Positions 6,022 to 31,768 of a DNA stretch of 64,000 bases are shown piece by piece (positions within the stretch are counted from its first letter, which is position 1; each line of letters opens with the position of its first letter). This stretch comes from Andalucia godoyi And28 (Eukaryota > Protista > Jakobida): the NCBI GenBank assembly GCA_009859145.1, contig VRVR01000015.1, positions 49,417 to 113,416 of the forward strand. Reading direction: 5' to 3'. The notes beneath the pieces were generated by a model. It made no database searches, had not been told where the DNA came from, and worked only from the letters and a program-made list of their open reading frames with translations. A program made the translations under genes and the position numbers.

Positions 6022-6023
<2 letters not shown>

Positions 6024-6055
<32 letters not shown>
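6024..6055. repeat. (TG)n microsatellite in the divergent Nudix/USO1 spacer
   Basis: Direct read. Confidence 0.95.
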
Positions 6056-6059
<4 letters not shown>

Positions 6060-6123
6060 TTTGTTGTCGAATTGACGTGGTTTGCAAACGACGGAAGCAG
6101 GTGGAAAGCAGCGTGGATTTGGA

Positions 6124-8550: not shown

Positions 8551-10281
8551 TCACGCTTCTCTTCTGTTGAAATTACGGACCTCTGTCAGCGTCAGGCACG
8601 TTCCAAGTGTCCACAAAGGTCTTGCGTGGGGAGTTTCCGTTTCTGATGGCGATGTCGATGTCGATGTCGATGTTGTTGGCGATGCCGATTGTCCTCGTGC
8701 TCTTGCAAACAGACTCGTGGCATGTACAGTCATCTTTCCAAGAATCCCTGCTTTGCTTGGGAGAGCCTCGTGCTCCTCATCAAGATTCCGATTTTTGCAT
8801 GCAATCCGCCCCACATCCCATCTGCATTTTTGATTCATGTTCGGAAAGGCAACGGACAGTTGCAAGCACGAATCCGCTGCGCAAATTCCAATTGGAGGGA
8901 GAACATATTCTCCGTACAGCATGTTTGGAGACACAAGAACCAAGAATATTGTGGTAATCAGCTGCTTGCTATCGTAAATTTTGCAGGTTGTTATGAATGG
9001 GATGTCCGTACTCTGAAATTGCGCAAGGACATGCAGGGTATAGCAGTGAGAAGTGATGATCTTGCTGTCCTGATGGATGTACCGATTTCTTGTGTTGTCT
9101 CGTATCCACACCCTTGGAAAAACGTGGATTTCTTTCGCTGCATCGGCACCCAGACCTTGTTGACTGCTTGCACAGCATGCAGACGGCGATACTGACGGTG
9201 TCGCCTGAACCGCAAACAACGAACGCTTGGTATTTTCTGTTGATGATCCCGTTCCAAGCGGCGAAGTCGGCACGGCCGTGAGCTTTCCAGGTTTCTCCTG
9301 TCTTGACGGTAGTGGTCCTTCCGGAAAAGAGCGGGGATGCGGGAACGGTCTCGTCTCTTTCGGAGTGTGTTCTGAGCAAAAGTGATCCTGAGGGTTCGTA
9401 TTGTGGCTTGCGAATGCCTCCTCCGATGGAACTGTTGATGCGGATTCTTGCAGCGCCGGTTCGTCGTCGTTTGCTTGGGACTGCGCTACCTTGGAATCGA
9501 CATCGCTGCTTGCGCAATGTGGAGACTGCTCCGCGACCGTCTTGCCCGTGTTCAAACAGCTTGCGATTCGACCCGCCTCCTTTCGGGATTCTCGTTTTTT
9601 CTTTTCCAGCTTTTCCCTGTAAATCTTGAAGATCTGCTGACTTTCGTCCAGTTCTATTGCTTTTGTGCATTTTGGACACATGCGAATCGTATATCTTGTT
9701 GCGAGCATTCTGTATTCGCAGCCAAGATGGAAAGAATGTCCGCAGCGCAGCGTGTGCCAGTCTTGAATCTGCCCGTCGATGCTTTCATCCAGAAGGCAAA
9801 TTCCACAATCGGTATCTTTCCAGATGCTTGCAATTTCTTCTGGCAATCTGTTCCTGACATACTCGACATAGGGCGGGTCCCATAAGCTGTCTTTGACGAG
9901 CACGCTTCGCTTCCTGCGTTCCGTTTCGTCGTAGGTCTCTTCTTTTTCGTATTCTACGGCTTTTGACCATCCGAATATTGCCTGTTGCTCCTTCCATTTC
10001 TGAACGATGAAATCAGACACGTAGTGTGCTCTTGAGCCGTACATCCACTGACCCAAAATTCTCTGTGTACCAGGATGCATCTCACGGACAAGCCTGTTTG
10101 CAATGTTCTCGAAAGCAGCCGCATTCTCCAGTCTCATTCTTCCCAGGAGCAAGCCCGGATTCTGCCGGTAACGTTCTGCAATGTCCTGGACCGTGCGCCT
10201 GTGCAACCGAGACATCTTGAATGGATATTTGACAGTATAACGAGAAGCCGCAGGCTGACTACCTTGTCTTTTGGAATTCAT
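8551..10281 (-). CDS. RING-H2 finger protein with an unrecognised beta-rich C-terminal domain
   Basis: CGIC-x14-CGHSFHLGC-x13-CPKC gives a C3H2C3 pattern; 576-codon ORF from an ATG. Confidence 0.7.
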   Translation of the reverse strand: MNSKRQGSQPAASRYTVKYPFKMSRLHRRTVQDIAERYRQNPGLLLGRMRLENAAAFENIANRLVREMHPGTQRILGQWMYGSRAHYVSDFIVQKWKEQQAIFGWSKAVEYEKEETYDETERRKRSVLVKDSLWDPPYVEYVRNRLPEEIASIWKDTDCGICLLDESIDGQIQDWHTLRCGHSFHLGCEYRMLATRYTIRMCPKCTKAIELDESQQIFKIYREKLEKKKRESRKEAGRIASCLNTGKTVAEQSPHCASSDVDSKVAQSQANDDEPALQESASTVPSEEAFASHNTNPQDHFCSEHTPKETRPFPHPRSFPEGPLPSRQEKPGKLTAVPTSPLGTGSSTENTKRSLFAVQATPSVSPSACCASSQQGLGADAAKEIHVFPRVWIRDNTRNRYIHQDSKIITSHCYTLHVLAQFQSTDIPFITTCKIYDSKQLITTIFLVLVSPNMLYGEYVLPPIGICAADSCLQLSVAFPNMNQKCRWDVGRIACKNRNLDEEHEALPSKAGILGKMTVHATSLFARARGQSASPTTSTSTSTSPSETETPHARPLWTLGTCLTLTEVRNFNRREA

Positions 10282-12961: not shown

Positions 12962-14023
12962 CTATTCATCTTCGCCATCATCTTCATCGTCCCTGTAGCG
13001 ACTATTATCACCGTCTTGCTCCTCCATGTCGTCAGAAATCTTGCTCCGACCGCTTTGTCTTTCGTGCGGATCGGGACTCTTAGAGAACAAGGATGGAGAC
13101 CGAGCCGATCGCCCAGAAATCTGTGTGTACCTCCTAGACGTCTCTCTGTTGCACATGTTGACCAACGTTTCCAATTGCTCGGAAGAGGCACATGTCATTG
13201 CCCGAGAGAGATCATCAATCACAACCTCGGGTCTGGCAAACCCGCGGTCTCCTGGGTCATTCCGTGCCTTCACGCCGCCACGTGAGGAAACCATTCGAAG
13301 CCCCGCACCTTGCCTTTCTTCGTCCCAAAAGCACATTATTGCAAATCGGACAATGTCTCCGTCTCGGATCAATGGCCGCGAGCTTCGAAACTCGACGTCG
13401 CAGAGAGACCGCGCATGCTGGATTCCGTTTTGCGCAACCATGTCGAACGCATATCTCGAATAGTCCTTCATCATGCAGAAATGCAGCAAAAATACACGAT
13501 TCGCAGCATCCTCATAAACCAAATCTGCAAAATGGCGGACGCTGCCAAGCCCCAGTTTCGTACACGGAACGTGCATCTGCATCCTCTTCACTCTTTCAAA
13601 CTTCAGAAGACTGCACGCAACACCAAAGCAAATTTCAATAGTGGTCAGCTCGGAAAAGAATGCTTTCTGTCGAAGCAGCGATCGCATCCTTTGGCGGAGG
13701 TTGATGACTGCAGTATAAGGATGTAGACCTCCGTCATCCGCCCATCGCTGGCTGCGCTGTCCATGCATGACAAGCTCAAACTTCTCAGAAACGTCAATCA
13801 GCCCAATCCGAATAAGAAACAAAACCGTCCGTCTCGCTTGCTCCGACGACGCAGGCATAAAATGTCGCCCGTACTCGTCATAAAAAGAAGTAAACAGCAC
13901 CGGAGACGACGAGACCGACGAACCACTCTCCGACGACAATTGCACCTGTGGCACCTGCTGTTGCTGCTGGGGTTGTTGTAGTTGTTGGGGACGCTCCTCA
14001 CTGACATTGATCCCTCCTTCCAT
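12962..14023 (-). CDS. Hypothetical protein, possibly a degenerate PD-(D/E)XK fold
   Basis: 353-codon ATG-initiated ORF with poly-Q N-terminus, globular middle and acidic tail; no firm family match. Confidence 0.65.
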   Translation of the reverse strand: MEGGINVSEERPQQLQQPQQQQQVPQVQLSSESGSSVSSSPVLFTSFYDEYGRHFMPASSEQARRTVLFLIRIGLIDVSEKFELVMHGQRSQRWADDGGLHPYTAVINLRQRMRSLLRQKAFFSELTTIEICFGVACSLLKFERVKRMQMHVPCTKLGLGSVRHFADLVYEDAANRVFLLHFCMMKDYSRYAFDMVAQNGIQHARSLCDVEFRSSRPLIRDGDIVRFAIMCFWDEERQGAGLRMVSSRGGVKARNDPGDRGFARPEVVIDDLSRAMTCASSEQLETLVNMCNRETSRRYTQISGRSARSPSLFSKSPDPHERQSGRSKISDDMEEQDGDNSRYRDDEDDGEDE

Positions 14024-15147: not shown

Positions 15148-17037
15148 TTATGGAGGTGGCATAGACGAAGCGTCCACAACGTGCCATTGGAAAACAATGT
15201 TTCCACTCTCGTCGCGAACAGGACCGTTTGAATCTGCAAGGAACTCGTTCGTATGATCCTCGATGACGATGCCCCCACCAAAGGAGTCGGTTGCTTCCGC
15301 CGTGTTGTCAACTATGGTAAACTTGCGATTGAGATTCGGCTGTACCACAGGGACATCGTGGACTTTCGATTCCACAGGACCGCTCGGAACTGAATTCTGC
15401 AAACAAGATGTCCAGTTAGCGTGAAACGATGCGTCCAGAGCATCCGGCGTCGACATCATCTGCTGGCTCCCAGAAACAGTGTTCTTCACATTTGCAACGG
15501 GGTCTCGACAAAACGAAGCATTGGAGTAGAAGGAGTGATGTTGCCCGGGAATCGGATATTCGCAATATCCACTAATCGGGGGCACGACGGCACCAGCGTA
15601 CGACATCTGATGATGACTCGCGGATTTTTCCGGTGCAAGATGTCCAGCGTACTCCATTTCTTCACGAGAGCGGCTTCTCGTCGTTGCAACGTGCGCAGTA
15701 CTCGGAAGATAAGGACAGAGGTGCGATGACGATGATGAGACAGATGGCAAAGAAGAAGACGAGGAAGAAAGAAAAGGAAGAGGAGGAGCAGGGGGAAAAG
15801 GATTATTTCGAGGTTCGACGTGGCCAGGCGGAAAGTGCGATGGCGCATTGAACAAGTTGGCTTCTCCGAGTGCAGAACCAGATCCGCTCCGGGACGAATA
15901 GGCGGGTGCGGCAATCGGCATGGCCCAAGGGTTGTAGTTGACAGAAGATCCATATGCAGAATAGGGAGCACTGAGATGAGTGCTCGCTTGAGACTCCGAG
16001 GCCGACGACAGTGGAGTGTGCACAGATGCCACCTTGGGAGGAACACAGGCAAGCATCATGTTCGACATCGCCGGAGTGGACGTTGATGCATAATAGGCCG
16101 CTGCAGACGCATCCGGAGAGCTGGCGAGGTGCGTACTGCCCTTTCCTGTGCTTCCGTTCGACGCGGAATGACTCATGCTGGACGTTCGCGCTCCAACGAC
16201 AATGGAAATCGGTGGCAGTGGCAGATGTTGCGACGAAGCAGAATGGGAAGACGTTGGGCAGTATTCGGTGGGGCATGACGCAAACCAAGCACGAATCGAG
16301 TTGTCAACCCCGCTCGAGGAACCGGAGCCGCTTGGATTAGACAGACTCACCGCGGACTTTGACAGAGATGGGTCAATGTAATGCGGTCGAAGACTCGGCG
16401 ACTCCGGTATGTAGACAGAGTTCTGTGTTGCTGGAGACCCATCGTCGCTGACGCGATACCGCAGGTTCCAAGCTGGAAGATCTCGACCGTGCAGTGCCGG
16501 ACCGCCATTCGGAAACGACGGGGAAATGCCTGCTGAGTGGTGACGATGGTTGTGACGGCGGTGGTTGTGGGGATGCTGAGGATCAGCATTGATGTTGTCA
16601 CACACAAGAGTCGGGTACTGTGTATGCGAATAATGAGGACGAAAATTCGACGAATTACTCGAATTTTGAAGAAGAAGGTGCTGTTGTTGTTGTTGAGGAA
16701 TCGAGGCATGTGGCTCTGAAAACGAACGGAACTGGGTAATACAATCTGGTCTTGAAAAAGCGGTTCCATGGTGGTCGGAAGCATCGGAGAGCCGTGCGTG
16801 TGAACCGCTGCTGTGGGACAAGGAAGTATGGGAAACTTCGTGCCCGCGTCCCTTGACAGGAGTCCTGCCCGACTCCGCGCTGGACGTCTGGCTGCTGGAC
16901 GAAATAGAAGGAACGGAAGCTCCTCTCTTACGCTTAGGAACAGGAACGGATAAGCTCGTAGGCTCCGACTTCCTCTTCAGCGGTACATCTCTTGTCGCTC
17001 CGGACTGCAAAGGCAGACTGCTCGTCTTTTGAGACAT
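15148..17037 (-). CDS. Low-complexity Ser/Pro/His-rich hypothetical protein with a short ordered C-terminus
   Basis: Long ORF; first plausible ATG at 17037 (MSQKTSS) after the (TGATGT)n repeat; KRK..PKRKR NLS-like motif. Confidence 0.65.
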   Translation of the reverse strand: MSQKTSSLPLQSGATRDVPLKRKSEPTSLSVPVPKRKRGASVPSISSSSQTSSAESGRTPVKGRGHEVSHTSLSHSSGSHARLSDASDHHGTAFSRPDCITQFRSFSEPHASIPQQQQQHLLLQNSSNSSNFRPHYSHTQYPTLVCDNINADPQHPHNHRRHNHRHHSAGISPSFPNGGPALHGRDLPAWNLRYRVSDDGSPATQNSVYIPESPSLRPHYIDPSLSKSAVSLSNPSGSGSSSGVDNSIRAWFASCPTEYCPTSSHSASSQHLPLPPISIVVGARTSSMSHSASNGSTGKGSTHLASSPDASAAAYYASTSTPAMSNMMLACVPPKVASVHTPLSSASESQASTHLSAPYSAYGSSVNYNPWAMPIAAPAYSSRSGSGSALGEANLFNAPSHFPPGHVEPRNNPFPPAPPLPFLSSSSSSLPSVSSSSSHLCPYLPSTAHVATTRSRSREEMEYAGHLAPEKSASHHQMSYAGAVVPPISGYCEYPIPGQHHSFYSNASFCRDPVANVKNTVSGSQQMMSTPDALDASFHANWTSCLQNSVPSGPVESKVHDVPVVQPNLNRKFTIVDNTAEATDSFGGGIVIEDHTNEFLADSNGPVRDESGNIVFQWHVVDASSMPPP

Positions 17038-18444
17038 TCCTTTGATGTTGATGTTGATGTTGATGTTGATGTTGATTTTGTATCGCTCAGAGTGGTAACT
17101 CCCGTTTGGCTGAACTCGCAGAAACAACAACACCCAGATGAATGAAAAAATAGGCTTCCAAAAAACTTGCCAAACAAACAAACAAAAAAAAAGACGCAGC
17201 AAAGCAGTTTATTGGGTCGCGGAAAGAGTTCAACCCAAAACACCCCAGTTTCAACAACAAAAAAATGAAAGGAGGGGAAGGTTTTCATTCGGAAGCGCTC
17301 CAAACAACGAAAAGGCATGAAAACTTCTTGCCAAAAAGTAGAAACGGTGTGCCCGATTGGAGCGATGATGCGTGCAAGCGCTGCGTCCCAGCCAAAGCAG
17401 GCTGCTAGGGCCAGGAAAACCGCCAGATAGCAAACATTCCGCATTTTGCGAAAATCCCAGTACTCGAATAGACGAAAGCGCTTTCGTGCGGCGTCCACAT
17501 TCTGTGACTCTGCCTGCACGTTCGAAGTCGGTGCCTTGACGCAAATTTGGCCAAGCATCACATTTCCATTCTTCTGGGAAACGGGCGGGGGTGAATGGAC
17601 ATGCGTACGGAGAGAGGCGAGGCACACATCGCAGCAGACTTTGCTCTTCTTTGGAAACTTCCGAACACCCTATCAAGCAACACCGTGCTAGCGGGTACAA
17701 ATCATCCAAACTGGGTAAGTATGAGACTTCGTCTCGTCGTTCGCTCACGCTTCGCAGCTCGAACTGCGCCTTACCAGTTTAAGGCATCCTCGATCTGCTT
17801 CTGCTGCTACCAGCCCGGAGGAGCCCGCTTCGCCTCCCGGGACCGTTCTTCGAATCCTCGGCTGCTCATACCGCGAACTTCCTTTGTTTTTTGTCGCCGG
17901 CTATCCTACGATGCCGTGGGAGCCTGCCGTCCGTTTTTTTTTTCCTTGACAGATTCCGCAGCGGTAATCGTCATACACAAACAGATGGGCCGTGGGAGCA
18001 AACGGCACTGACGTGCCTGCACAGTGCCTGCGGGCTCGGGTTGCCAAGCAGCCAGAACCCAGGTCCATCAAACCTTTTCAGGGCACGGCGGCGTCAAGCG
18101 ACAGAAGCACCTCGGAAGCCAGAAACAAGAAAAAGAAAAAAAAGAAAAGGATGTTTCGTTGCTCCGCAAGCTGTTGTTCTTCTACCAAAACATCCATCCA
18201 TTTTAAAAAATAATGAGAAGTAACAAATAGTAGTTTTCAGGAAATAGCTTCAGACTTCTGCATGCACAAACCTCTTCACTGGCAGAAACATTAAAAACAA
18301 CTCTGTTTGTGGCCGCACGATCATAGTGTCCATAGTATCAATACCAGTATTTTATACATATTTAATTCATTTTTCAAAAAAAGAAAATATTCTTGTTTCA
18401 TTCTCTTTCTCTGTGACGAACTGCGTTCCCAACTGCTGGTTGAA

Positions 18445-18516
18445 ATCATAGTATCATAGTATCATAGTATCACAGTATCACAGTATCACAGTATCATTGT
18501 ATCATAGTATCATTGC
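18445..18516 (+). repeat. Nine tandem octamers ATCA(T/C)(A/T)GT ending 3 nt before the ATG of the 2209-aa gene
   Basis: atcatagt x3, atcacagt x3, atcattgt, atcatagt, atcattgc, then gaaATG. Confidence 0.92.
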
Positions 18517-18519
18517 GAA

Positions 18520-21500
18520 ATGGAGTCTCCCGGTCGCAATTCTGAAAGCCGGCCGTGGAAAGTTCTGCCGTCTCCTGAATCAACTCGGTCAATGCAGGGT
18601 GCATACACGATGCCCCATCCACCTGTTCTCGCGGCCAGCAACCCTCAGGCGCTTTCTAAAATGGGTGAGCCGCCAAAGAACCCCCTTTTCAAGTCGAAGT
18701 TCTCTGCAGCAGAACAGTTGTCCATGCTTCGACGGCCACCCCCGCCTCCAAGTACCATGCGAGATCCTAATGGCTTTCCAGAAGGGACGAACGTGTTCAG
18801 CGAGTCGCGGAATATAAGCCGATTGCTGAACGAAGATCGTCGGAGAAACAAGTTGATGTTTTGGATCATGGGAATCCACGTCGTTCTCTTTTGGGCTGTC
18901 GTTGGATTGCTTGTCTACAACACCTTGATGTTGCAGAGCCTTGCAAGGGAGTCTAACTGGGACGTTTCCAAGATGACTGCCAAACAAGTTACCACGAGTA
19001 ACTTGCAAGTTTCATCCAGTGGTCCGCAATCCGTGTCTGTGGAGTCCACGAACAACGCAGCGTCGTTATCTGTCATGTCCAGCGTTGGCGCAGCGTCCCT
19101 GGTGCTGGACGGAGCTGATTCGCCGATCTCTCTTCTCTCGCGGAATGGTGAGCTTGTGATGGAAGCAGGCAATCAGCCCGCCATGAAGATCGCTGGTTCC
19201 GGAAGCAGCTTCAACGGTAGTGTCTCGACGTCGTCTCTCAAGGCAAACACCATTGACTTGTCTGCAGGCGCTGCATCGATCCTGTCGTTTACCACTTCAC
19301 CGAGTCTTTCCCCGGATGGCAGAATCGTGACGATGGCCAGCGATGTGCAAACCAATTCGATGTCATTTGCTCCGTCCACAGGGCTGTCGATTGCAAAGGG
19401 AGCTTCCGAATTGCTGCTCATCAAGGATAATGTGCTGTTGAATTCCATCCGCGGCGGATTCGTGCAAGTGAACGACGTGCTTTTTGTAAATCAGACCGTG
19501 CAACTCTCTGGCCTCGTGGTTTCGAGTCGCGGTATCTCGGTAAGAAATGGGAGCCTCGATGTCTCGACTGCTTCTGGAGATGTGTCCATTTCTGCGGGGC
19601 ATGGAATCATTGTTGCGCAAAGCGACGTTCTTCTGCAGACAGGACGCGGACTGTATGTGTCTGATGTGTTCTCACCGTCGTCTCAAAACCTCACTTTGCA
19701 TTCCAGCACTGGATCGCTGACTTTGAATGTCTCCAGCGTGTTCATTGGTCCTGCTGAAGAGGCGACTGTGGCGCTTGCCGGTTCTCTGAGAATTGTTGCT
19801 GGCTCGGGGGCCGCTGGCACGTCTGCCATTGGTCATGGATCCGGCGGTAGTGGTGTGAAGGGAGGAGACGTCTCGATTCAAGCGGGTGCAGGTGGTGCAG
19901 GAGGGTCCTCGGGGGGATTCAGTGGTGCTGGTGGAAATGCAGGCTCTGGTGGAAATGTGCTCCTGGTTCATGGAACTGGAGGCAGCGCTGCGGCTGTAGA
20001 CATTCTTCAAACGTCTGTTGCAGGTGCTGATGGAGAGGTTATCGTATCTGCCTCCTGTCTCGTTTCAGGTGCCCACTGCGGCCCCACCGCTGCTTCCCGA
20101 ATGAGAATATCATCCCCATCACCCGTACTGTCTCTTGGAGATAAAGACGCATCGTTCGGATTTCGTGCGAACTCGTCCTCCGCCTCTAGTTCTCTTCATT
20201 TGTTTTCCGATGCATATGGTGGCGATGTCGTCAAGGTGGGGTCCTCTGCTTGGAGAGATCCATTTGACACTCGCGCGACTGTGAACATTGAGCAGGGGGT
20301 CTTGCGAATTCGCCAGGAGAACGTCGGTTATGTCGCCGCGGTTGTGTCCCCTCTCTCTACCACAGTATCACTCATCTCGCAAGTCAACAGCACCGCGGTT
20401 TCTTTCAACAATCATTTCTTTGTCGTGTCCGATAGCGCATCATTGCATCTGTTTTCATCGAGTGACACGGCAAAGAGGCTTGAGCTTCGCGCATCGGCAC
20501 CTGCGATTCTGGCAAGAGGCCTTCCGTTTTCCTTCGTCGACAACACGGTAGGCATGCAGCAAGTGATCATCACGTCAGAAAGAGTGCATGCTGCAAATGG
20601 ATCGACCATCCAAGTCGGAAGCGGAGTCGTTTCCTTTTCAGACGGGCTTGTTCTTCGTTCTCGCGAGTCAGCAATTCAATTCAAAGACTCTGCAAGCGTC
20701 ATTTCCATCAATGCCACCTCCTACTTGTCCGTCGATTCTCCGGAACCGACGAGATTCCTGGCAGGCATTGCGCTGTGCACGGCCTCTCCAGCTGCTGATC
20801 CGACGTGCGCAAATTCCATTCTTCTGAATGGAACTTCTGCGTCGATTTCCTCGGCTTCGCTGGCTCTCGATTTTTCGACGTCCACCGTGACCACGGACAA
20901 GTTGTATGGCCGAAATAGCTTGTTTCTTAGTTCGACGACCGGGGTGTTCGTGGATTCGACAAGACCGCTTTCCGGCGTAACACTCCCTGCGGCCGGTGGC
21001 TTGCTTTCAGACTTGCAAATCTTCTTTTTCAATTCCACTGTTCTGAGCCGAAATTCGTCAATCTACTTGAAGCCTGCGGATGCGCTGGTAGTCACTGGAT
21101 CTCAGCTTGTGAAAGTTGGCTCGCTGATGTTGTCTGGACAGACGAGTGTGTTGTCTGGCCCAGGAATGGTGCTTGACTATTCCGCCAACGCATTGGGCTC
21201 GACTTCCGGCCAGGGACTTGTGGTGTTCTCTCACAGTTCTCTGAAGATACTGGCTAGTTCGTCGAGCCTTATTTTGTCAGCCTCCGCATCCAGCCGCTTG
21301 CTCCTGCAGGACGGTGCTCGAATTGTGGATGGATCGACAATGGTGTTGAATTTTTCGGCGGCCTCCTTGCAGTCTCTGGGCATTCTCTATATGAACCCGC
21401 TTTCGGAAGTAGTAGTGCAAGGCACGTCAGGATCCACGACTGTAACGCTTGGAGACCGCAGCGTTTCTGAAAACATCCGCATGACGCCTACGTCCGTGAC

Positions 21501-24500
21501 AGGAGCTTCGTTGCAGCTCTTGTTTTCTGCCTCACCTGGTGTTCCGGGGGCAACGTCCTCCATCAAAGATTCTGCTCGGGATTTGGTTGTCAGTTCGCTA
21601 TACAACAAAGTGGTATTGGCGGCTGGTGCTCCAGGAATCATGGTGGAAGTCTCTCCGGAAGCGTTCACTGCCAGTGGCGGATCTGCTTCCCCTCGCATGT
21701 CCACTTCCAAATCGTCTTTCTACCTGGATTTTGGTACGCGAACGGTAGGAACCTCGGCTGGCACAGAGAGTCTTGTGCTACGCGGCGGCAATGATGTCCA
21801 AATTACAGGTACCAATCGTATTGTTTTTGGCTCAACTGTGACTGCGCAGTCGCTAACAGTGTGTGGTTCCTGCGGAGTGTCGTCTGACCAGTACTATATT
21901 TCCGGGCTGCAGCTGAAGATGGACTTTGTCGGCTCTTCGTTAGAATCACAGACTGGAGATATGATCATTTCTTCTCCTGCAGTTGCGGGTGTGGTCTCTC
22001 TTCGTTCAACGTCTGGTGTTCGACTGAAATCAGCGTCGGGCACCACCGGCTTAAATATGCGAGACGAGAATTCGAATGTTGAAATTGACTTTGCTGCGCG
22101 TTTGGTTCGATCTATGACGGGAGAACTCACCATTTTAGGAGAAGCTTCCACGAGAATTGTGTCTGGCGACGCAGGTTTATTTCTTCTGCCTTTGGGATCG
22201 GGGCCATCAAAGCCTCTGAAGATCATTGCTGGTGCAGCGGACAGTGCGTTGTACTACCAGAGACCCGTTGCAACTTGTGCGGGCACCTATACGACGTTTT
22301 TTGCTGGACAAAATGCCATTGGTGGATGTGCTTCTGGAGGTGGCGCTGTTGTGGTTTCTGCCGGCTCTGCGTTCCAAGGAGCAGGTGGCGATGTGTCGCT
22401 CATTGCTGGAGATAACACTGCTGCCCCCGGGAAAGCCGGAGATGTTTACCTCATTTCTGGCCAGAATATTGGTGGCAGCATTGGTGATACACTCGTTCAG
22501 ACTCGCCAGATGAATGTGTATTTCCGAGGAGCACAGTGGAAAGTACTGAGCGTTGGTACGAGCACCGTCGATGGTGACTTTGTGTATGTTGGAAACACGA
22601 ATTCATCGTACGCCTTCGATACCGATGCTTACACTGATCTGATTGTGACTCGGTCTCGAATTCAGAGCCTGGTTGCAGCGGAGACGATTACTATCTCAAA
22701 CGAGATTCCGGTATCTCGGAACATTCTTACCTCGATCCAGATCGGTCATCCCACCGACATGACCAAGTATACGCAGCTGATTTACGCGCGCGCGCTGCGG
22801 TATCGGTTTGTGGATCCAGCGTCGTACACAGGATTCTATATGGACCCGATCAGCATTCTGCTCAATCGATCGCACTCGATTGATGTGTGGACGACGAATC
22901 TGACAGCGCGATCGGAGGGATTCCTTGATTTTCAGACGGGGACGCAGGGTGTGCGCATGGGGCCGATTGACACGCTTCGGACGCTTGCGGTGGAGATTGG
23001 ATCGGTGAAAGCACCGGTGGAGATCTATCGTCCGCAGTCGAACGGTGTTGCTGGCACATACACGAAGCTCATTGGCCAAGATGCGTGCACGTCGTGCGGC
23101 GCTGGTGGCGCGGTGTCTGTGTATGGCGGAATGTCAAACAGTGCCTCGTCTGCAGATGTTGGTGGATCTGTCAACCTGTATGCGGGAACCGGTGGTGCTG
23201 GCAGTTCTGGCGGACCCATTTCGATTGTGGCCGGATCTGCGTCTACTTCGGGTTTTGGAGGATCCATACTTCTCCAGGCAGGGACAAGCGATATCACCAC
23301 GTCGTATGGTGGGACGAATGTGCGCACGCGGTGGTTTGATGTTCGGAGAGTATCGGGTGCGTACTCTATGATTCGGACGGACACACATACCGATGACAGC
23401 TCGGGAGACTTTGTGCACATCGGGAATACGGATGCAACGTATGCATATGACGCCGTCGAGTATACGGACAACATAGTTTTGCGCTCCCGTGTGCAGCAGC
23501 TGATTGCGGGTGAGAACATTACAATCTCGAACGAAATTCCGGTGTCGCAGAACATCGTGACGTCCATCCAGATTGGACATCCCACCGACATGACCAAGTA
23601 TACGCAGCTGATTTACGCGCGCGCGCTGCGGTATCGGTTTGTGGATCCAGCGTCGTACACAGGATTCTATATGGACCCGATCAGCATTCTGCTCAATCGA
23701 TCGCACTCGATTGATGTGTGGACGACGAATCTGACAGCGCGATCGGAGGGATTCCTTGATTTTCAGACGGGGACGCAGGGTGTGCGCATGGGGCCGATTG
23801 ACACGCTTCGGACGCTTGCGGTGGAGATTGGATCGGTGAAAGCACCGGTGGAGATCTATCGTCCGCAGTCGAACGGTGTTGCTGGCACATACACGAAGCT
23901 CATTGGCCAAGATGCGTGCACGTCGTGCGGCGCTGGCGGCGGGATATCCATTTACGGCGGTAATGCACACAGCACGCTTGCCTCTGATACCGGCGGTTCC
24001 GTAGAGTTGCGTGCTGGTCAAGGTGCTGCTTCCAGTTCTGGTGGTTCCATTTCCCTTGTAGCTGGTTCGGCATTGGGTGCCGGTACTGGTGGATCGTTGT
24101 CGATCGCCGCTGGTGCTGGAGCTGGCACATCTACGTATGGTGGTGTGAATGTTCGAACGCGGTGGTTTGATGTGCGACAGATTTCCGCAACGTATTCTTT
24201 GTTGCGCATCGACACGCATCCCGATGACACCAGTGCAGATCATGTAGACATTGGAAATGTAGACAGCTCGATTCCCTACACAGACACTCGGTATACCAAC
24301 AAAGTGCAGGTTCGGGCCACGGAATTTGCCGTCGAAGTTGGCTCTCAAATGAATGTTGTTCCTGCGCAGTCTTCGTCATCGCAATTTCTTGTCGGCTCGA
24401 ATTCGGTAGTGTTTAGTGCGATTCAGTTACGAGCCAGTACAACCACCATCTATGATGGCTCCAATGTTGCGGCCCTTACAATTGCAGCATCCTCTGCGAC

Positions 24501-25149
24501 CCTTTCGCGTTCGACCACGCTCTCTTTGGAAACCACTGCTGGCACGGGTACGATAATCAATGTCGGTACAAGCACAGCTTTCACAGAAAACGTCTACATT
24601 CGAGGAACCACCGTGAAGATTTTCACGTCTGCATCAAGTCCAACAGTGACGGTCCAAAACGGTGGCAACTTGTTGATTAGCGTCGGTGCCTCGAACTTTG
24701 TCAAGATCGTCAGTGGCGATGTCGATGTTCAGGCTGGAAAATTCCGAGAATACGGAAACAGCATTCTGCCTAAGGGTTCAATTATCTTGTTCCGTGGATC
24801 CGCCTGTCCGCCTGGCTATACATTTGTGTCCGATACGGCGGATCGAGTACTCGTTGGTGCAGTAACTTCGACCACTGCCTCCCCTTCCTCTCTTGGGCCT
24901 CTTGTTGGAGTTTCTTCCTATCAGTTTCAAGTCAAGACGTCTTCTGCGACCGTTAATCTTCCAGACCATGGGCATGCTGTGTCAACAGTTTCTCAACCTA
25001 TTTCTGGCTATGGTACTACGTCCGTCTACAGTGGACCGGCCGGGTCTGGCGTGTCGAACGTCCCCATTACTGCATTCCAATCGGATTCTAAGAACATCAA
25101 CCAAATTCTGCCCGGTGTCTACATTCTTGTTTGTGAAAAGGATATCTAG
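18520..25149 (+). CDS. 2209-aa type II membrane-anchored Ser/Gly/Thr-rich beta-repeat fibre-like protein with a C-terminal phage tail-collar-like domain
   Basis: Uninterrupted ORF; one hydrophobic helix at aa ~112-133 after RRRNK; GG-x-V/I-x-I/L-x-AG repeats; 277-aa internal repeats; C-terminal LPKGSIILFRGSACPPGY...LPDHGH...ILVCEK. Confidence 0.85.
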   Translation: MESPGRNSESRPWKVLPSPESTRSMQGAYTMPHPPVLAASNPQALSKMGEPPKNPLFKSKFSAAEQLSMLRRPPPPPSTMRDPNGFPEGTNVFSESRNISRLLNEDRRRNKLMFWIMGIHVVLFWAVVGLLVYNTLMLQSLARESNWDVSKMTAKQVTTSNLQVSSSGPQSVSVESTNNAASLSVMSSVGAASLVLDGADSPISLLSRNGELVMEAGNQPAMKIAGSGSSFNGSVSTSSLKANTIDLSAGAASILSFTTSPSLSPDGRIVTMASDVQTNSMSFAPSTGLSIAKGASELLLIKDNVLLNSIRGGFVQVNDVLFVNQTVQLSGLVVSSRGISVRNGSLDVSTASGDVSISAGHGIIVAQSDVLLQTGRGLYVSDVFSPSSQNLTLHSSTGSLTLNVSSVFIGPAEEATVALAGSLRIVAGSGAAGTSAIGHGSGGSGVKGGDVSIQAGAGGAGGSSGGFSGAGGNAGSGGNVLLVHGTGGSAAAVDILQTSVAGADGEVIVSASCLVSGAHCGPTAASRMRISSPSPVLSLGDKDASFGFRANSSSASSSLHLFSDAYGGDVVKVGSSAWRDPFDTRATVNIEQGVLRIRQENVGYVAAVVSPLSTTVSLISQVNSTAVSFNNHFFVVSDSASLHLFSSSDTAKRLELRASAPAILARGLPFSFVDNTVGMQQVIITSERVHAANGSTIQVGSGVVSFSDGLVLRSRESAIQFKDSASVISINATSYLSVDSPEPTRFLAGIALCTASPAADPTCANSILLNGTSASISSASLALDFSTSTVTTDKLYGRNSLFLSSTTGVFVDSTRPLSGVTLPAAGGLLSDLQIFFFNSTVLSRNSSIYLKPADALVVTGSQLVKVGSLMLSGQTSVLSGPGMVLDYSANALGSTSGQGLVVFSHSSLKILASSSSLILSASASSRLLLQDGARIVDGSTMVLNFSAASLQSLGILYMNPLSEVVVQGTSGSTTVTLGDRSVSENIRMTPTSVTGASLQLLFSASPGVPGATSSIKDSARDLVVSSLYNKVVLAAGAPGIMVEVSPEAFTASGGSASPRMSTSKSSFYLDFGTRTVGTSAGTESLVLRGGNDVQITGTNRIVFGSTVTAQSLTVCGSCGVSSDQYYISGLQLKMDFVGSSLESQTGDMIISSPAVAGVVSLRSTSGVRLKSASGTTGLNMRDENSNVEIDFAARLVRSMTGELTILGEASTRIVSGDAGLFLLPLGSGPSKPLKIIAGAADSALYYQRPVATCAGTYTTFFAGQNAIGGCASGGGAVVVSAGSAFQGAGGDVSLIAGDNTAAPGKAGDVYLISGQNIGGSIGDTLVQTRQMNVYFRGAQWKVLSVGTSTVDGDFVYVGNTNSSYAFDTDAYTDLIVTRSRIQSLVAAETITISNEIPVSRNILTSIQIGHPTDMTKYTQLIYARALRYRFVDPASYTGFYMDPISILLNRSHSIDVWTTNLTARSEGFLDFQTGTQGVRMGPIDTLRTLAVEIGSVKAPVEIYRPQSNGVAGTYTKLIGQDACTSCGAGGAVSVYGGMSNSASSADVGGSVNLYAGTGGAGSSGGPISIVAGSASTSGFGGSILLQAGTSDITTSYGGTNVRTRWFDVRRVSGAYSMIRTDTHTDDSSGDFVHIGNTDATYAYDAVEYTDNIVLRSRVQQLIAGENITISNEIPVSQNIVTSIQIGHPTDMTKYTQLIYARALRYRFVDPASYTGFYMDPISILLNRSHSIDVWTTNLTARSEGFLDFQTGTQGVRMGPIDTLRTLAVEIGSVKAPVEIYRPQSNGVAGTYTKLIGQDACTSCGAGGGISIYGGNAHSTLASDTGGSVELRAGQGAASSSGGSISLVAGSALGAGTGGSLSIAAGAGAGTSTYGGVNVRTRWFDVRQISATYSLLRIDTHPDDTSADHVDIGNVDSSIPYTDTRYTNKVQVRATEFAVEVGSQMNVVPAQSSSSQFLVGSNSVVFSAIQLRASTTTIYDGSNVAALTIAASSATLSRSTTLSLETTAGTGTIINVGTSTAFTENVYIRGTTVKIFTSASSPTVTVQNGGNLLISVGASNFVKIVSGDVDVQAGKFREYGNSILPKGSIILFRGSACPPGYTFVSDTADRVLVGAVTSTTASPSSLGPLVGVSSYQFQVKTSSATVNLPDHGHAVSTVSQPISGYGTTSVYSGPAGSGVSNVPITAFQSDSKNINQILPGVYILVCEKDI
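22747..23936 (+). repeat. Intragenic direct repeat: 359-bp identical copies at 22747-23105 and 23578-23936 (period 831 bp = 277 codons)
   Basis: Base-by-base comparison shows identity; flanking parts of the repeat unit are conserved in protein but diverged at synonymous sites. Confidence 0.95.
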
Positions 25150-25562: not shown

Positions 25563-28019
25563 ATGTCTGGCTGGGACGAAGGCGGAGTCTTTGTGGCGAA
25601 TGCAGGACTTGTGGACGATGCATCCGAAGGCGGGCTGAACTCGGATTCGGGTCTCCGAAATGCAGCATTGTCGACATTCCAAGCACGGCTTCGAGACTTC
25701 CTGCGACAGTTTGAGTCTGGAAATGAATATTCATACCGTGAGATGCTTACGACCCGGATTAGGACTGGAGTGTTCTCAATTCCCGTTTCGCTGGATGATT
25801 TGCGTGCATATGACCCGGCATTGGCGGATGCAATTGTGATGCAGCCCAACACGTATCTCCCGCTTCTGGATGCTGCGCTTCTGGATGCTGCGCGACTGAT
25901 CTTGCATCCCGATGAACTGATTCCGTTGTTCAATGCTCATCCAGCGGGACTGCCGGCTTCTTCGAACAATGCCACTGCCCCAACGACGTCGTTGCTGCAA
26001 GCGGAGCTGATTTACAGAGCCCGGCCGTTGCACATTCGCGATCTTTCGTCCTCACTGGTTGGGCGACTTGTTGTAGTTCGTGGAATTGTGATTGCATCGT
26101 CCAAGACACGCGCAAAGGCTTCATCGCTTGTACTATCGTGTCGATCGTGCCGTGCCGTCAAGACGGTGTCGGTACGTCCTGGATTCTCTGCAGCTTCTAT
26201 TCCCCGAAAGTGCGATGGACCATCGTCATCAGATGCAACGGCACAGTGTCCGCTGGATCCGTTCGTGGTTGTTGCAGATAAATCCACGTTTGTCGATCAA
26301 CAGACCCTGAAACTGCAAGAGCCTCCCGAGGCCGTACCGACTGGTGAAATGCCTCGACATGTCTTGTGTGCGGTGGACCGTGGATTGGTTGCCCGCGCAC
26401 CTCCGGGTTCTCGTGTTCGTATTGTTGGTGTATATTCGATTATGAACAACAATATGGGACCGACAGCTGGCGGAGTTGCCCTGCGAACACCTTACATCCG
26501 AATCGTCGGAGTGATGATGGACTCGCTTGCAGGGACGTCTTCTTCTCTTGCAAACTCGCTGTTCTCTTCTTCCAGTGCCAACCCAAGCGGTAGCAATGCG
26601 AATGGTGGCGATGCAGAGCGCACAGACGGAATGATGTGGCTCATGTCGGAAGAAGAGCAATACAAGAGGCTTGCTGCGGATCCCCAGTGCATAGACAAGC
26701 TTGTCGCCGCAATGGATCCTGCCATTTATGGCCATGAGAGAATCAAGCTGGCGGTAGCCTGCCTGCTCTTCGGAGGAGCCCGAAAGGCGCCGATGCCCAC
26801 TGGAACACGGGTCAGAGGAGACATCAATGTGTTGCTTTTGGGAGATCCTTCAACTGCAAAATCGCAGTTTCTGAAGTTTGCAGAACGTGTTGCTCCAGTC
26901 GGAGTCTATACTTCTGGAAAGGGTTCTTCAGCAGCTGGTCTTACTGCGTCTGTTGTTCGCGATCCGACCTCGGGAGAGTTCTATTTGGAAGGTGGATCCA
27001 TGGTTTTGGCGGACGGCGGAGTCGTTTGCATTGACGAGTTCGACAAGATGAGAGCATCGGATCGAGTTGCGATTCACGAAGCCATGGAGCAGCAGACAAT
27101 CTCCATTGCAAAGGCCGGTATTACCACCGTGTTGAATGCTCGTGCTGCCGTGTTGGCTGCTGCCAATCCTTTGGCTGGTCGTTACGATGATATGAAGACT
27201 GCGTCCGAGCAGGTGGATTTTCAGTCTACTATCCTTTCGCGTTTTGATCTTATCTTCATTGTGCGCGATGTTCGCGATGAAGCTCGCGATCGGTCTCTTG
27301 CGCAGCACGTCTTGGGAGTCCACATGGCCGCAACTGCCGCATCTGGCTCATCGTTGAATACGTCGCTGCTTGGTGGCGGAGGAGACGTTGTCGCTGCTGG
27401 CGCGGGCGCTGGGAAGGACGGATCCAACAGTACATCTGGACGCTCTGTTGCTCCGGTGCGCGATGAACTCAGTGTGGATTTCTTGCGAAGATACATTGCC
27501 TATTGCCGAGCACATTGCTCGCCACGTCTTTCTGCGGAAGCAGCCAGAACTTTGGAGCATTTCTTTGTACAAATTCGAGCCCAAATGAGAGAGAGATCCC
27601 GTCAAGCAGGGACGTCTGTTCGTCAAATTCCCATCACAGTGCGCCAGCTGGAATCTTTGGTGCGCGTGTCCGAGTCGCTTGCGAAGATGACTCTGTCCAC
27701 AACTGCAACCGTGGACCATATCAACCGTGCTATCGAACTGTTCAAAGCATCGACCATGGAGGCTGCGAACTCGGGAATGCTGGCTGCCGCTGACGAGTAC
27801 CTCGCACCAGAAACCCGTGCTGCGATCTCGCGGGCGGAAGCTATGGTGCAGCGCTTGGTCGGCATCGGACAGATTGCGGCATCTGGAAAGGTTGTGGAAA
27901 GCGTGGTGTCTCAAGCTGGTGTTGGAGACTTCGCTGTCCATCGTGCTCTTTTTGCGATGGAAAAACGCGGCGAAATCGAGTTTCTCAGACAAAAGAAACA
28001 GTTCAAGAGGATGCGGTGA
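25563..28019 (+). CDS. MCM5: DNA replication licensing factor MCM5
   Basis: MSGWDEG N-terminus, CRSC zinc finger, GDPSTAKSQFLK Walker A, VCIDEFDKM Walker B, ILSRFDLIF arginine finger, ITVRQLESLVR. Confidence 0.97.
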   Translation: MSGWDEGGVFVANAGLVDDASEGGLNSDSGLRNAALSTFQARLRDFLRQFESGNEYSYREMLTTRIRTGVFSIPVSLDDLRAYDPALADAIVMQPNTYLPLLDAALLDAARLILHPDELIPLFNAHPAGLPASSNNATAPTTSLLQAELIYRARPLHIRDLSSSLVGRLVVVRGIVIASSKTRAKASSLVLSCRSCRAVKTVSVRPGFSAASIPRKCDGPSSSDATAQCPLDPFVVVADKSTFVDQQTLKLQEPPEAVPTGEMPRHVLCAVDRGLVARAPPGSRVRIVGVYSIMNNNMGPTAGGVALRTPYIRIVGVMMDSLAGTSSSLANSLFSSSSANPSGSNANGGDAERTDGMMWLMSEEEQYKRLAADPQCIDKLVAAMDPAIYGHERIKLAVACLLFGGARKAPMPTGTRVRGDINVLLLGDPSTAKSQFLKFAERVAPVGVYTSGKGSSAAGLTASVVRDPTSGEFYLEGGSMVLADGGVVCIDEFDKMRASDRVAIHEAMEQQTISIAKAGITTVLNARAAVLAAANPLAGRYDDMKTASEQVDFQSTILSRFDLIFIVRDVRDEARDRSLAQHVLGVHMAATAASGSSLNTSLLGGGGDVVAAGAGAGKDGSNSTSGRSVAPVRDELSVDFLRRYIAYCRAHCSPRLSAEAARTLEHFFVQIRAQMRERSRQAGTSVRQIPITVRQLESLVRVSESLAKMTLSTTATVDHINRAIELFKASTMEAANSGMLAAADEYLAPETRAAISRAEAMVQRLVGIGQIAASGKVVESVVSQAGVGDFAVHRALFAMEKRGEIEFLRQKKQFKRMR

Positions 28020-28332: not shown

Positions 28333-31266
28333 CTACATGTTTTCCTCGTCTGATTCGTAGTCGCCGTATCTCCAGATTCCACGGCGGTTCGTTCTTGCAA
28401 ACTCTTGTTCCTGCGTGAACTGGCTGACGATAGCCTGGAATACGGCTTCTCGTCGCGATTGGACCCGCGCAAATCCGCCGTGGATCAGGGTTGCGTTGAT
28501 GTTGACATTCCGCGTGTAGTCGAGCAGCACCACCCAAGATTCACGTCCATTCACCGAGCGGTACTGCACTTGGGCGGTCAAAACACGGGTGTTCTGGCCG
28601 GTCTTTGCATCGAAATCTTGGGCAAGTCGTCCCAGTTCAAAGGCACAGTCATCTCCGTTTTCATCCGAAGGCGCCCGAACAAATGCCAAATGGCACAGCA
28701 TGGCCTGCGCAGGAACGCGCTCCAGAGAAACATCAGAATATGCAGAAGTCATGGGGCGTGTATCACGGAAGGCAACACGCTCCACGTTCCCAAAGTCGAC
28801 GTACAGCACTTCAGCAATCTTTTCAGATTCAAAGACTTGGACAACCCGCGCTCGATACCACTTTCCGTCCGCAGAGAACTTGGCAAGAAGCGGCATGTTG
28901 GAAACTGACTTTTTGTTCTTCTTGAGTGCTTCTTCAATGGCAAATGCCCCCTTTTCAGGTGCAATTTCATCGAGCCCGAGGCTCTCGAGCCCGGCAGCAA
29001 TGGCCGACAGGGCGTTGGACTCGGGGACGGCATAGAACGTCGTTCCATCAACAATATCGGTCATGAGCAATCGCACAGACTCCGGCTTTAGAGGGATGAC
29101 AATCGTCGGATCACGATACTCGCCACTGCGCCCGGCAGCAGACGACTCATCGCCGCCAAACGCATCATCGCCGTCTTCTGCAGTGTCAAATGCATCTTGC
29201 TCACTCTGGCCAAGAGTGAAGAGACCCTTTGCTGCAGCACGTCCGCGTTCGGCAGCCTTCTTCAGGTCTTCTGCATACGGAGAACGATCAAGAGACTGGC
29301 GGTGGAGTCTCGAAAGACCTTCCTCCACAATCCATTCCGCAAAGTTCACTTTTCCTGCGTGTTTCGCCAGAGTTGATGTGCCCGGCACAAACAAAGCCCC
29401 AAGGAACGTTCCCTTCGGATCTACCCCCGTAACTTCTACCTCGACCTCGCGTTGCAAAATATGCTCCCGAGCAAACCACAGCGCCTCCAAACCAAACACC
29501 TCCCCTTTAGGACCCCCTTCGCGGTTCGCGGGAGGCTGTGGCGATCTGATTCCTTCAATGGCGAACGCGACAACGCACGATTCCTTGGGCAAGTACAAGC
29601 GCACACGGGAACCTGTGGAGACGTACACCACGATGGCCGGCTGTCTCTTGGCTCGCTGCAGAAAAGGCAGGAACTGACGTGCCTTTTGTGCATTGTTCAC
29701 CTCATTAATGTGCTGTTTCGGAGCCTGTCCTGTCGAATGGATACCAACTTTTCCCTCTTTGGCCCGAATCTCTGCGGCCGAGAGCTGATCGTAGTCGCGA
29801 GCGCGTTCATCGTCTCCAGCTTTGTGCTTGAGCACCAAAGCAAGTCCGGCCTCGACAAGCGCGACAGCGGCATTGATCTTCCCCTGAATGACCGTGGCCA
29901 TGAGTCTCTCGCGCTGGTTATCCGGGGACTTGCGCTTGTAATCAACACGCACACGCACAGCCTTTCCAACAAGTGCTTTTCTCAACATTTCCTTTGCCTC
30001 GAATGCGTACGGTTCATCTTCGGATCCGGTATCAAGACCCGGTCGCTTTGGTGCTAAACGTGGTGCGCGGATCGAGGCCAGCGATACGCTGAGCTGCGCG
30101 TCCATTGAATGACCGTTCGGAAGCACCACAATCGTATCACCAGAAACGACCTCAATTACATGAGCTGAAAATTCCCGTCCCAGAGTCGTAGCGGCCGCGG
30201 CAGCGCCTCCAGATGATGCAGACGCAGAAGATGCAGAACCCACGGCAGACGCTGCAGAAGGGATGGTGATGGAGCTGATTCCTTCTGGAGCAACATAGTC
30301 TTTCCAGACTCCCAAGCAGCGTTCTTTTGCAACTCGCTCTGCCTTGCGCAACTGCGCAGCAAACTTTGTGAGTGCCATGTTCCATTCCTGGATGCGGGCA
30401 AGACCGTCCGCTAGCAGCGCCTCTGAAAAAGGTTTTCCAGATGGCGATACAATGGACGCAAACAGACAAGTTCCGTTCTTGTCCATCCCTTCGAACTCAA
30501 CCGATACCGACCTCTGCAGCAACCGTGACTCTGTAAACTCCTTCGCCCGTTCACCAAGAGCAGCCTCCTCCGGATTCTCATCCTTGATTGACGGACACGA
30601 AATTCCAGTTTGACGCACCAGAATCATCTGGTAGGAAGGCATCATGAGCAATCGCACAAATGCGCCATCAATAACCTGTTCGACAACGCACGTTTGCTTT
30701 GTGCCCTTCACTGCGGACAACAGTGCCGAGCCATCATACGTGCCCCACGGTGCAACCTGTGCGGGTCTCGTGGTACTCGAGAACATTCCTACTTTTCCAT
30801 TCATTGCCTTTTCTTCGAGTGCAATCAGCATCGCTTGGTACTCATCGACATTTGCATCTTCGCGAGTCGGCTTCTTCACTCTGACCCATCCACTCTGCAC
30901 AAGTCGCACCGATACATCATCGCCACCCTCGTCACCCGGTCCAGAACCAGCTTCCGAAGCTGTCGCTCCCAGAAGCTGAACAGTCCCATAGTCCCGCTTT
31001 GCATTCGGATTCTGGTACAAAACAGTAAACTTCACCTGCTTTCCAACAACAAGCTTTCGCAAAAACTCGCGCGACTCCCAGGCAAACGCCTCGTCTGTCT
31101 TACCAGCCATACCGACTTCGGACGACGCCGGTCCACCGCGCGATCCAAATCGAGGCGCCTGCAAATGCGTCAGCGTAAGAAGCTTCTCAATCTTTTGCGA
31201 AGGATGCTTCAACACAAGAGTATCTCCTGACAAGACAGACTTTACAATCGCAGTTCCAGTCGACAT
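28333..31266 (-). CDS. SND1: Tudor-SN / staphylococcal nuclease domain-containing protein 1
   Basis: Four SN repeats (VKSVLSGDTL, EAFAWESREFLRK, EVVSGDTI, EPYAFEAKEMLRK) plus Tudor (DGKWYRARV..VLYVDFGN) and C-terminal IWRYGD; start at ATG 31266. Confidence 0.96.
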   Translation of the reverse strand: MSTGTAIVKSVLSGDTLVLKHPSQKIEKLLTLTHLQAPRFGSRGGPASSEVGMAGKTDEAFAWESREFLRKLVVGKQVKFTVLYQNPNAKRDYGTVQLLGATASEAGSGPGDEGGDDVSVRLVQSGWVRVKKPTREDANVDEYQAMLIALEEKAMNGKVGMFSSTTRPAQVAPWGTYDGSALLSAVKGTKQTCVVEQVIDGAFVRLLMMPSYQMILVRQTGISCPSIKDENPEEAALGERAKEFTESRLLQRSVSVEFEGMDKNGTCLFASIVSPSGKPFSEALLADGLARIQEWNMALTKFAAQLRKAERVAKERCLGVWKDYVAPEGISSITIPSAASAVGSASSASASSGGAAAAATTLGREFSAHVIEVVSGDTIVVLPNGHSMDAQLSVSLASIRAPRLAPKRPGLDTGSEDEPYAFEAKEMLRKALVGKAVRVRVDYKRKSPDNQRERLMATVIQGKINAAVALVEAGLALVLKHKAGDDERARDYDQLSAAEIRAKEGKVGIHSTGQAPKQHINEVNNAQKARQFLPFLQRAKRQPAIVVYVSTGSRVRLYLPKESCVVAFAIEGIRSPQPPANREGGPKGEVFGLEALWFAREHILQREVEVEVTGVDPKGTFLGALFVPGTSTLAKHAGKVNFAEWIVEEGLSRLHRQSLDRSPYAEDLKKAAERGRAAAKGLFTLGQSEQDAFDTAEDGDDAFGGDESSAAGRSGEYRDPTIVIPLKPESVRLLMTDIVDGTTFYAVPESNALSAIAAGLESLGLDEIAPEKGAFAIEEALKKNKKSVSNMPLLAKFSADGKWYRARVVQVFESEKIAEVLYVDFGNVERVAFRDTRPMTSAYSDVSLERVPAQAMLCHLAFVRAPSDENGDDCAFELGRLAQDFDAKTGQNTRVLTAQVQYRSVNGRESWVVLLDYTRNVNINATLIHGGFARVQSRREAVFQAIVSQFTQEQEFARTNRRGIWRYGDYESDEENM

Positions 31267-31768
31267 TTCCCCTTTCTTCTTTCTTCTTTCTTCTTTCTTC
31301 CTTTCCAAACTGTGTTTTCCTAAATACTTCTCGGGTGGAAAGAAATGTTCTAGATTCAAATGTTGGAAGAAAAAAATAAACAACAAGAAAACAAAAAAAC
31401 AAAAAACAAAAAGGAAATTAAAATAAATAGGAACGGAAGGAAAAGAAGGAAAAGAAGGGAAAGAAAGGGAAAGAAAGGGAAAGCCGAGACACGAGAAATT
31501 TGAAGTAGTTCAAAGTCGTGAGAAAGAGAGAAACCAAGAGCAAAGCACAAGAAAACCACAAAACCACAAGAATTACAAATAAGACACGTGTTCGAGTTTC
31601 GGATGTGTTTTGCTTTGATACAGTCCAGTCCACCGAAGAAAAGAGAGAGAGAAAAGTGCTTGCATCAATTGATCCAGCGAAAACGGTTGAATGAAATTCC
31701 CCAGCTTTTCTGAACGTTTCTCTTTTTGGAAAAAATCTCTCTTTGCTTTTCTTTTTAATTAATTAATA

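Follow-up and report, generated by a model that had tools for sequence, protein, structure and literature searches.

The gene and its C-terminal tip

The 64,000-nucleotide stretch of Andalucia godoyi And28 DNA analyzed in this work (contig VRVR01000015.1, positions 49,417 to 113,416; hereafter the window) contains an intronless open reading frame (ORF) at positions 18520..25149 on the + strand, which codes for a protein of 2209 amino acids plus stop. The final 128 residues and the stop codon are encoded at 24763-25149 (+), and it is this C-terminal segment (the tip) and its relationship to the collar domains of phage tail fibres that are described here. The initial annotation of the window had interpreted the segment as a phage tail-collar-like tip with a His-x-His (HxH) motif, possibly a trimeric, metal-stapled receptor-binding structure. 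Translation of 24763-25149 reproduced exactly the strings quoted in that annotation, ILPKGSIILFRGSACPPGYTFVSDTADRVLVGA ... VNLPDHGHAV ... KNINQILPGVYILVCEKDI, followed by the stop codon. The coordinates of the individual parts given below, all of which are on the + strand, were verified by translation.

The tip is preceded by a neck (SGDVDVQAGKFREYGNS, 24712..24762), which is conserved in the jakobid paralogues; some of the closest relatives among prokaryotes have it too, as do Collar proteins verified with Pfam. The N-terminal half of the collar-like core (24763..24864, residues 2082-2115) holds the invariant Cys2096-Pro2097. Cys2096 (24805..24807), the first of two cysteines that define a subfamily (see below), stands directly before a Pro-x-Gly-aromatic motif. 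The variable insert between the core halves (24865..25104, residues 2116-2195) carries the HxH motif, here HGH (24967..24975, residues 2150-2152), with His2150 and His2152 assigned by translation and from the alignment columns. The C-terminal closing strand of the core (ILPGVYILVCEKDI, 25105..25146) comprises the last 14 residues and holds the second subfamily-defining cysteine, Cys2205 (25132..25134), which was invariant in a 41-row tip alignment, and Lys2207, which was conserved in at least 90% of the rows of the same alignment. Among the jakobid rows the core segments were 42-51% identical, as against 14% for the insert. Histidines occupied the HxH columns in 8 of the 9 jakobid rows and in 31 of the 32 prokaryotic rows.

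Relationship of the tip to phage collar domains

In phage T4 the D10 domain of gp37 has the gp12 collar fold, which is found also in gp10 and gp11; the gp37 needle is an insertion into D10, and iron ions are held by histidines from three chains (PMC6957217). The collar of T4 gp12 corresponds to residues 342-397 (PMC3004832). Direct searches with the sequence of the tip returned little. A word-indexed protein search with the C-terminal 182 residues found nothing, and tblastn against phage genomes gave one weak match, a putative tail fibre of Synechococcus phage S-TIP37 (database-wide E 0.09), whose matching stretch itself scores Collar below threshold. In sequence searches of the PDB the best match, 9qgo ('tail fiber protein', E 0.06), was sub-significant, as were the further matches obtained with the 41-row profile, 9cuy ('short tail fiber', E 0.17) and 8kec ('long tail fiber', E 0.22). 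The top three matches of this profile were thus phage fibres, all below significance, and T4 chains were absent from the PDB matches of the single-sequence, two-row and 41-row queries.

An exhaustive profile search with a two-row alignment, consisting of the window tip and the tip of its closest paralogue, identified 128 proteins at a library-wide E≤1e-3 among 1.84 billion representative proteins, and in most of them the match ran to the last residue. When 115 of the matches were scanned with Pfam, 13 matched Collar (PF07484) and 6 Gp10_C (PF21939). Sixteen matches, referred to below as the classical group, lacked the two cysteines. All ten classical proteins that were scanned matched Pfam Collar at E≤0.0011, seven of them above the gathering cutoff of 24 bits, and four of the ten matched also Gp10_C just downstream (two above the cutoff of that model). 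The library-wide E-values of the classical proteins against the Andalucia profile ranged from 1.6e-9, obtained with the protein P0010, to about 1e-4. In pairwise comparison, the neck and collar start of the window protein were 38% identical to P0010 over 63 residues. The matches that comprised several stretches proved not to be the Collar-positive ones; the Collar-positive proteins are the matches without the first cysteine.

Profile-profile comparison gave the same answer. Aligned by hhalign to 15 classical proteins, the 41-row alignment yielded a probability of 99.2% (E 2e-19) over 152 columns extending from the neck to the last strand and including the HxH segments, the nine jakobid rows alone 99.4% (E 4.5e-21, 61 columns), and the two-row alignment 99.3% (E 7.4e-21, 86 columns); these E-values are optimistic because the targets had been preselected by the Andalucia profile, a bias from which the library-wide values are free. 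With reversed targets, tested with the 41-row alignment or the jakobid rows, the probability was 0.5% or less (E 0.13-0.36, 16-33 columns). On the strength of these sequence comparisons the tip is very probably homologous to the superfamily of phage tail-fibre collar and gp10 C-terminal domains, of which it would be a diverged member. The link to Collar runs through intermediate sequences or profile-profile comparison. The collar-type resemblance of the C-terminus noticed in the initial annotation is, judging from the profile search, the Pfam-verified intermediates and hhalign, more than chance, and the order of motifs described there (N-terminal strand motif, HxH segment, short C-terminal strand) holds throughout the family. 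We agree that the tip is the best clue to the origin of the protein.

The predicted fold was examined with an AlphaFold2 (AF2) model of the monomer computed from the 41-row alignment. Its mean predicted local distance difference test score (pLDDT) was 71.7, with ten-residue blocks reaching 92-94 in the two core segments (up to 94 at residues 2086-2105, 92 at the C-terminal strand) and falling to 50-55 at the start of the insert; the model computed from the two-row alignment had a pLDDT of 36. Low confidence in the insert would be expected if this part folds only within an intertwined oligomer. The best Foldseek match in the PDB was 6ov6 (E 0.29, template modelling (TM) score 0.41, 14% identity), a weak match to which no sequence-level counterpart was found. 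This structure has been described as the putative receptor-binding tip of the long tail fibre of a Bizionia argentinensis prophage, similar to the tip of the T4 long fibre. Among the top approximately 30 matches in BFVD, a set of predicted viral structures, nearly all were tail-fibre, phage tail collar domain, Gp10 C-terminal or MdpB proteins, including proteins of Terrestrivirus, Orpheovirus and Cafeteria roenbergensis virus (E from 0.011 upward, probability up to 0.98, TM not above 0.40). The agreement in kind among the matches to the modelled fold is striking. As to the structural likeness to collar domains that had been proposed, the fold matches are of the right kind, but none of them is significant.

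The layout of the window tip is that of the T4 gp12, gp10 and gp37 tips: it is located at the C-terminus of the fibre, and its core consists of two parts, an N-terminal segment and the final strand, between which the HxH insert is placed. With proteins that match both the Collar and the Gp10_C models, the window tip aligned across the whole domain. In contrast to the T4 tips, it matches neither Pfam model, the stretch after its Pro-x-Gly-aromatic motif is shorter, and it has two cysteines that the classical members lack. The T4 fibre is anchored in the baseplate, whereas the window fibre is predicted to be anchored in a membrane and belongs to a eukaryotic host. Tail-collar domains outside phages are already known from MdpB proteins and giant-virus fibres. 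Of the bacterial and giant-virus proteins of this type, P0010 (source name microcystin-dependent protein) resembles the neck and collar start of the window protein. Unlike the 2209-residue membrane protein of the window, MdpB proteins are short and are soluble or part of the virion, and their classical motif with a cysteine after the aromatic residue is absent from the window protein.

The two-cysteine subfamily and its jakobid members

By its sequence the tip belongs to an unannotated two-cysteine subfamily, to which the larger group of the profile-search matches belongs as well. The initial annotation missed this subfamily, the membrane anchor described below and the eukaryotic nature of the host. 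The subfamily is marked by a cysteine before the Pro-x-Gly-aromatic motif and by a second cysteine, which is located five residues from the C-terminus in the window protein and four residues from it in most relatives. In the 41-row alignment both cysteines and the proline were invariant, and ten more columns, including both histidines of HxH, were at least 90% conserved. Across all proteins retrieved, 219 have the first cysteine; the sequence closes with a Cys-x-Lys/Ala motif in 202 of them and has a cysteine 3-5 residues before the end in another 13, and the other 4 are fragments. Conversely, 18 of 19 proteins without the first cysteine lack also the last one. This co-occurrence points to a disulfide, or else to a shared ligand role, by which the cysteine pair would join the first core segment and the final strand.

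A search with the 41-row alignment identified 182 proteins at E≤1e-5, nearly all of them unnamed proteins of 150-300 residues for which no Pfam domain had been precomputed. The matches with a name came from metagenome-assembled genomes (MAGs) of Patescibacteria, Pacearchaeota and Spirochaetia, and an earlier match from a Planctomycetota MAG. Scanning one genome per prokaryotic species revealed 179 loci; the 80 loci listed were nearly all in MAGs and belonged to Elusimicrobia, Patescibacteria, DPANN archaea, Omnitrophota, Actinomycetota, Bacteriovoracia and others. The prokaryotic members share with the window tip both cysteines, the HxH columns, the extreme C-terminal position and, in part, the neck. 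They differ in being mostly proteins of 150-300 residues with an N-terminal signal anchor, usually with two or more HxH motifs and with tryptophan in the Pro-x-Gly-aromatic motif, whereas the jakobid tips are mounted on proteins of 1300-2600 residues. Andalucia-type tips have tyrosine or phenylalanine at the aromatic position and at most one HxH; the tips of the second jakobid, Stygiella, have tryptophan and three HxH.

Members were found also on viral contigs. When IMG/VR was scanned with eight close prokaryotic members as queries, eleven contigs were positive, and in one of them (UViG_3300048591_000707, 5680-6468) the member is part of a phage structural module, with a gene for a major head protein (phrog_1328, E 2.5e-48) 2.2 kb upstream of it. 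The large ORFs adjoining this member are without a PHROG match. A different setting was seen in GCA_900175155.1, in which three tandem genes for proteins of 227-230 residues, at least two of which belong to the two-cysteine tip family, directly follow a T2SSF platform gene and two prepilin-like Laminin_G_3 genes. Judging from this locus, some bacteria may employ the module as a cellular component associated with pili. As members occur both in phage contigs and in a pilus-type locus, the module is used by phages and apparently also by cells. The two-cysteine proteins, which are widespread among uncultured bacteria, make up a large collar branch in candidate-phyla bacteria, DPANN archaea and phages that is missed by current curated models.

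In A. godoyi the tip terminates a long membrane protein. Residues 1-111 (18520..18852) form a predicted N-terminal cytoplasmic region with a basic RRRNK stretch at its end, and residues 112-134 (18853..18921), the sole strongly hydrophobic segment, a single transmembrane helix. Because the basic stretch directly precedes the helix, the topology is predicted to be N-in, C-out, which implies a type II protein with a cytoplasmic N-terminus and approximately 2070 residues outside the cell. This ectodomain is composed of 15% serine and 11% glycine and is rich also in valine, alanine and threonine. It includes a tandem 277-residue repeat module in about 2.5 copies (residues ~1228-1933, 22201..24318), the copies being 54-95% identical. 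A search of the PDB with a 1946-residue ectodomain sequence covering the shaft found nothing meaningful, the shaft had no match in Pfam, and the Pfam scan of the whole protein gave nothing relevant; the scan of five jakobid paralogues detected no Pfam domain, Collar included. In an alignment of the window protein with P0002, P0003, P0004, P0006, P0013 and P0245, a histidine and a tryptophan within the helix and an arginine before it were invariant in all seven jakobid proteins. A polar histidine within a helix that crosses the membrane once may point to packing of helices against each other (e.g. in a trimer) or to a partner protein. Three paralogues have a short Asn-Pro-Leu-Phe motif in the cytoplasmic head.

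The search with the whole protein gave two matches, both from A. godoyi in EukProt: ANDGO_04149 and the paralogue ANDGO_08282 (63% identity). The public model ANDGO_04149 (1932 residues) equals the window protein minus one 277-residue repeat, the two being identical through about residue 1530; the mismatch in copy number at 22201-24318 can be due to collapse of the repeat during assembly or to a genuine difference. Further paralogues are ANDGO_07176, 02842, 02946 and 02922 (1329-2636 residues), so that A. godoyi carries at least six. Homologues are encoded by transcripts of Stygiella incarcerata, one of them a protein of 1665 residues, and are therefore expressed. A Logan contig from SRR15116022 (6623 bases, GC content 0.59) codes for a 2061-residue relative with the membrane helix and a tip without HxH, which falls inside the Andalucia-type clade of the tip tree. 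Six relatives have the membrane helix after an N-terminal cytoplasmic region, all jakobid relatives end in the tip, and several have the repeat module. In a neighbour-joining tree of the tips, seven Andalucia-type sequences formed a clade (bootstrap 91); together with two Stygiella sequences this clade made up a larger one (bootstrap 74), separate from every prokaryotic row. Since the jakobid tips form one clade, the simplest reading of the tree is a single capture before the split of Andalucia and Stygiella, followed by gene duplication. Literature searches found no description of such a protein family in jakobids.

The genomic setting of the gene is that of an ordinary eukaryotic locus. The gene is adjoined by MCM5 (25563-28019), beyond which lies a Tudor-SN nuclease gene on the minus strand (28333-31386); the other neighbouring ORFs code for a CCT chaperonin subunit, a radial-spoke head protein, a PAS-adenylate cyclase and an SF1 helicase. 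Its GC content (0.53, and 0.53 also at third codon positions) is on par with that of the neighbours. The A. godoyi genome is compact (~20 Mb) and mostly without introns (PMC7050145), with which the window agrees. In view of its eukaryotic neighbours and native base composition, the gene is a resident of the jakobid nuclear genome, and neither a contaminant nor an inserted virus.

Possible role of the fibre and alternative explanations

The reading that we consider somewhat favoured by these results is that the protein belongs to a jakobid-specific family and is a membrane-anchored, probably trimeric surface fibre with a phage-type distal tip, which would be stabilized by metal and by the cysteines and would use the insert as a contact surface. 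In this scheme, the ancestor of Andalucia and Stygiella would have captured a neck-plus-tip module from a bacterium or a phage, and the module would since have served as the terminal part of a long surface fibre. If phage fibres are a guide, three chains may assemble, the HxH histidines may bind a metal ion located on the three-fold axis, the two cysteines may tie the N-terminal segment to the C-terminal strand, and the variable insert may be the exposed surface contacting a ligand. The likeliest ligand in a bacterivorous flagellate would be a bacterial surface structure, with adhesion to prey or substrate as the outcome. Phage tail-fibre tips are the best-understood devices for bacterial surface recognition. 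Since bacteria are the food of A. godoyi and bacterial envelopes the target of phage tips, binding of bacteria is the most attractive function by analogy, and a role in bacterial recognition is plausible. That a phage or bacterial receptor-binding tip has been domesticated into a multigene set of prey-capture or prey-discrimination receptors on membrane-anchored fibres is a more specific proposal, which we put forward only tentatively and regard as rather unlikely in this full form. What is new here is the combination of a eukaryotic host, a membrane anchor, a 2000-residue shaft and a multigene family, together with the two-cysteine branch.

Several observations speak against a phage-type contact tip. 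The HMMER comparison with Pfam Collar proposed in the initial annotation was negative for the window protein itself (no match even at E≤1 with the full protein or with the last 128 residues), and scanning of the tip and the whole protein gave no direct match in Gp10_C, PHROGs or NCBIfam. The preselection of the hhalign targets belongs to the same side of the balance. The monomer model is only moderate (mean pLDDT 71.7, lowest in the insert) and no fold match is significant: the match with the best E-value, 0.011, has a TM of 0.27, and no TM is over 0.41. The HxH motif has been lost from the relative P0003. The relatives at 4615-6687 in GCA_900175155.1 adjoin pilus-type, not phage genes, and the homologous domains of T4 gp10 and gp11 have a structural role in the baseplate and do not bind receptors (PMC6957217).

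This last point is also an argument for the most serious alternative, which we consider possible but improbable, namely that the tip is a C-terminal trimerisation or folding nucleus of a structural cell-coat or glycocalyx fibre and has no specific ligand. The core and the neck are the most conserved parts, as an assembly module requires, and Andalucia tips have a single HxH and a short insert, where the prokaryotic relatives mostly have two or more HxH. However, the insert is only 14% identical between paralogues while the core is kept, and there are at least six paralogues in one small genome; a variable insert in combination with many paralogues is the pattern expected of a diversifying contact surface. 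Moreover, a pure assembly module has no need of a membrane-distal position.

The gene might also have been derived from an integrated giant virus, virophage or virus-like element, in which case it would encode a virion fibre. Tail-collar proteins do exist in giant viruses, as seen also in the BFVD matches, and tail collar domains have been reported in virophage-related elements. Nevertheless, on either side of the gene the tested neighbours with a Pfam match are housekeeping genes and include no viral hallmark gene, the base composition is native, the cytoplasmic head and membrane helix are conserved in dispersed paralogues and in Stygiella, and the closest relatives are prokaryotic and phage proteins, not those of giant viruses. 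This explanation is therefore largely refuted, and its probability is very small. Still smaller, and in practice negligible, is the probability of an artefact, i.e. contamination with bacterial or phage DNA or a chance resemblance of motifs. The circumstance that no curated profile matches the protein directly could be taken to indicate an artefact, but the tip closes, in frame, an ORF of 6.6 kb that has eukaryotic genes on either side on a single contig; against Collar proteins confirmed by Pfam, E-values corrected for library size go down to 1.6e-9, the reversed-sequence controls fail, and homologues are present in the transcriptome of a second jakobid. Contamination, provirus and chance were accordingly rejected on context, composition and statistics.

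If the tip proves to be merely part of a structural coat fibre, the finding is of modest interest, a tidy story of domain capture. With the surface fibre that we favour, the protein offers a concrete candidate for the way in which small flagellates that eat bacteria make contact with their prey or tell it apart, a step that is poorly known. Conserved in two jakobid genera and fully adapted in base composition, the tip would be a clear example of a protist having taken up a prokaryotic or phage module and put it to new use.

Some minor features of the locus may be mentioned. Three ORFs near the gene, all on the minus strand (8551-10281, 12962-14023 and 15148-17202), were without a match to Pfam at E≤1e-5. 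At 18445-18513, ending six bases upstream of the start codon, lies a tandem repeat with an 8-bp unit (ATCATAGT, 8.6 copies, 93% matches), which could be part of the promoter or the 5' untranslated region or have no role. The long minus-strand ORFs in the region of 22201-24318 (e.g. 23134-24348) are probably by-products of the 277-residue repeat.

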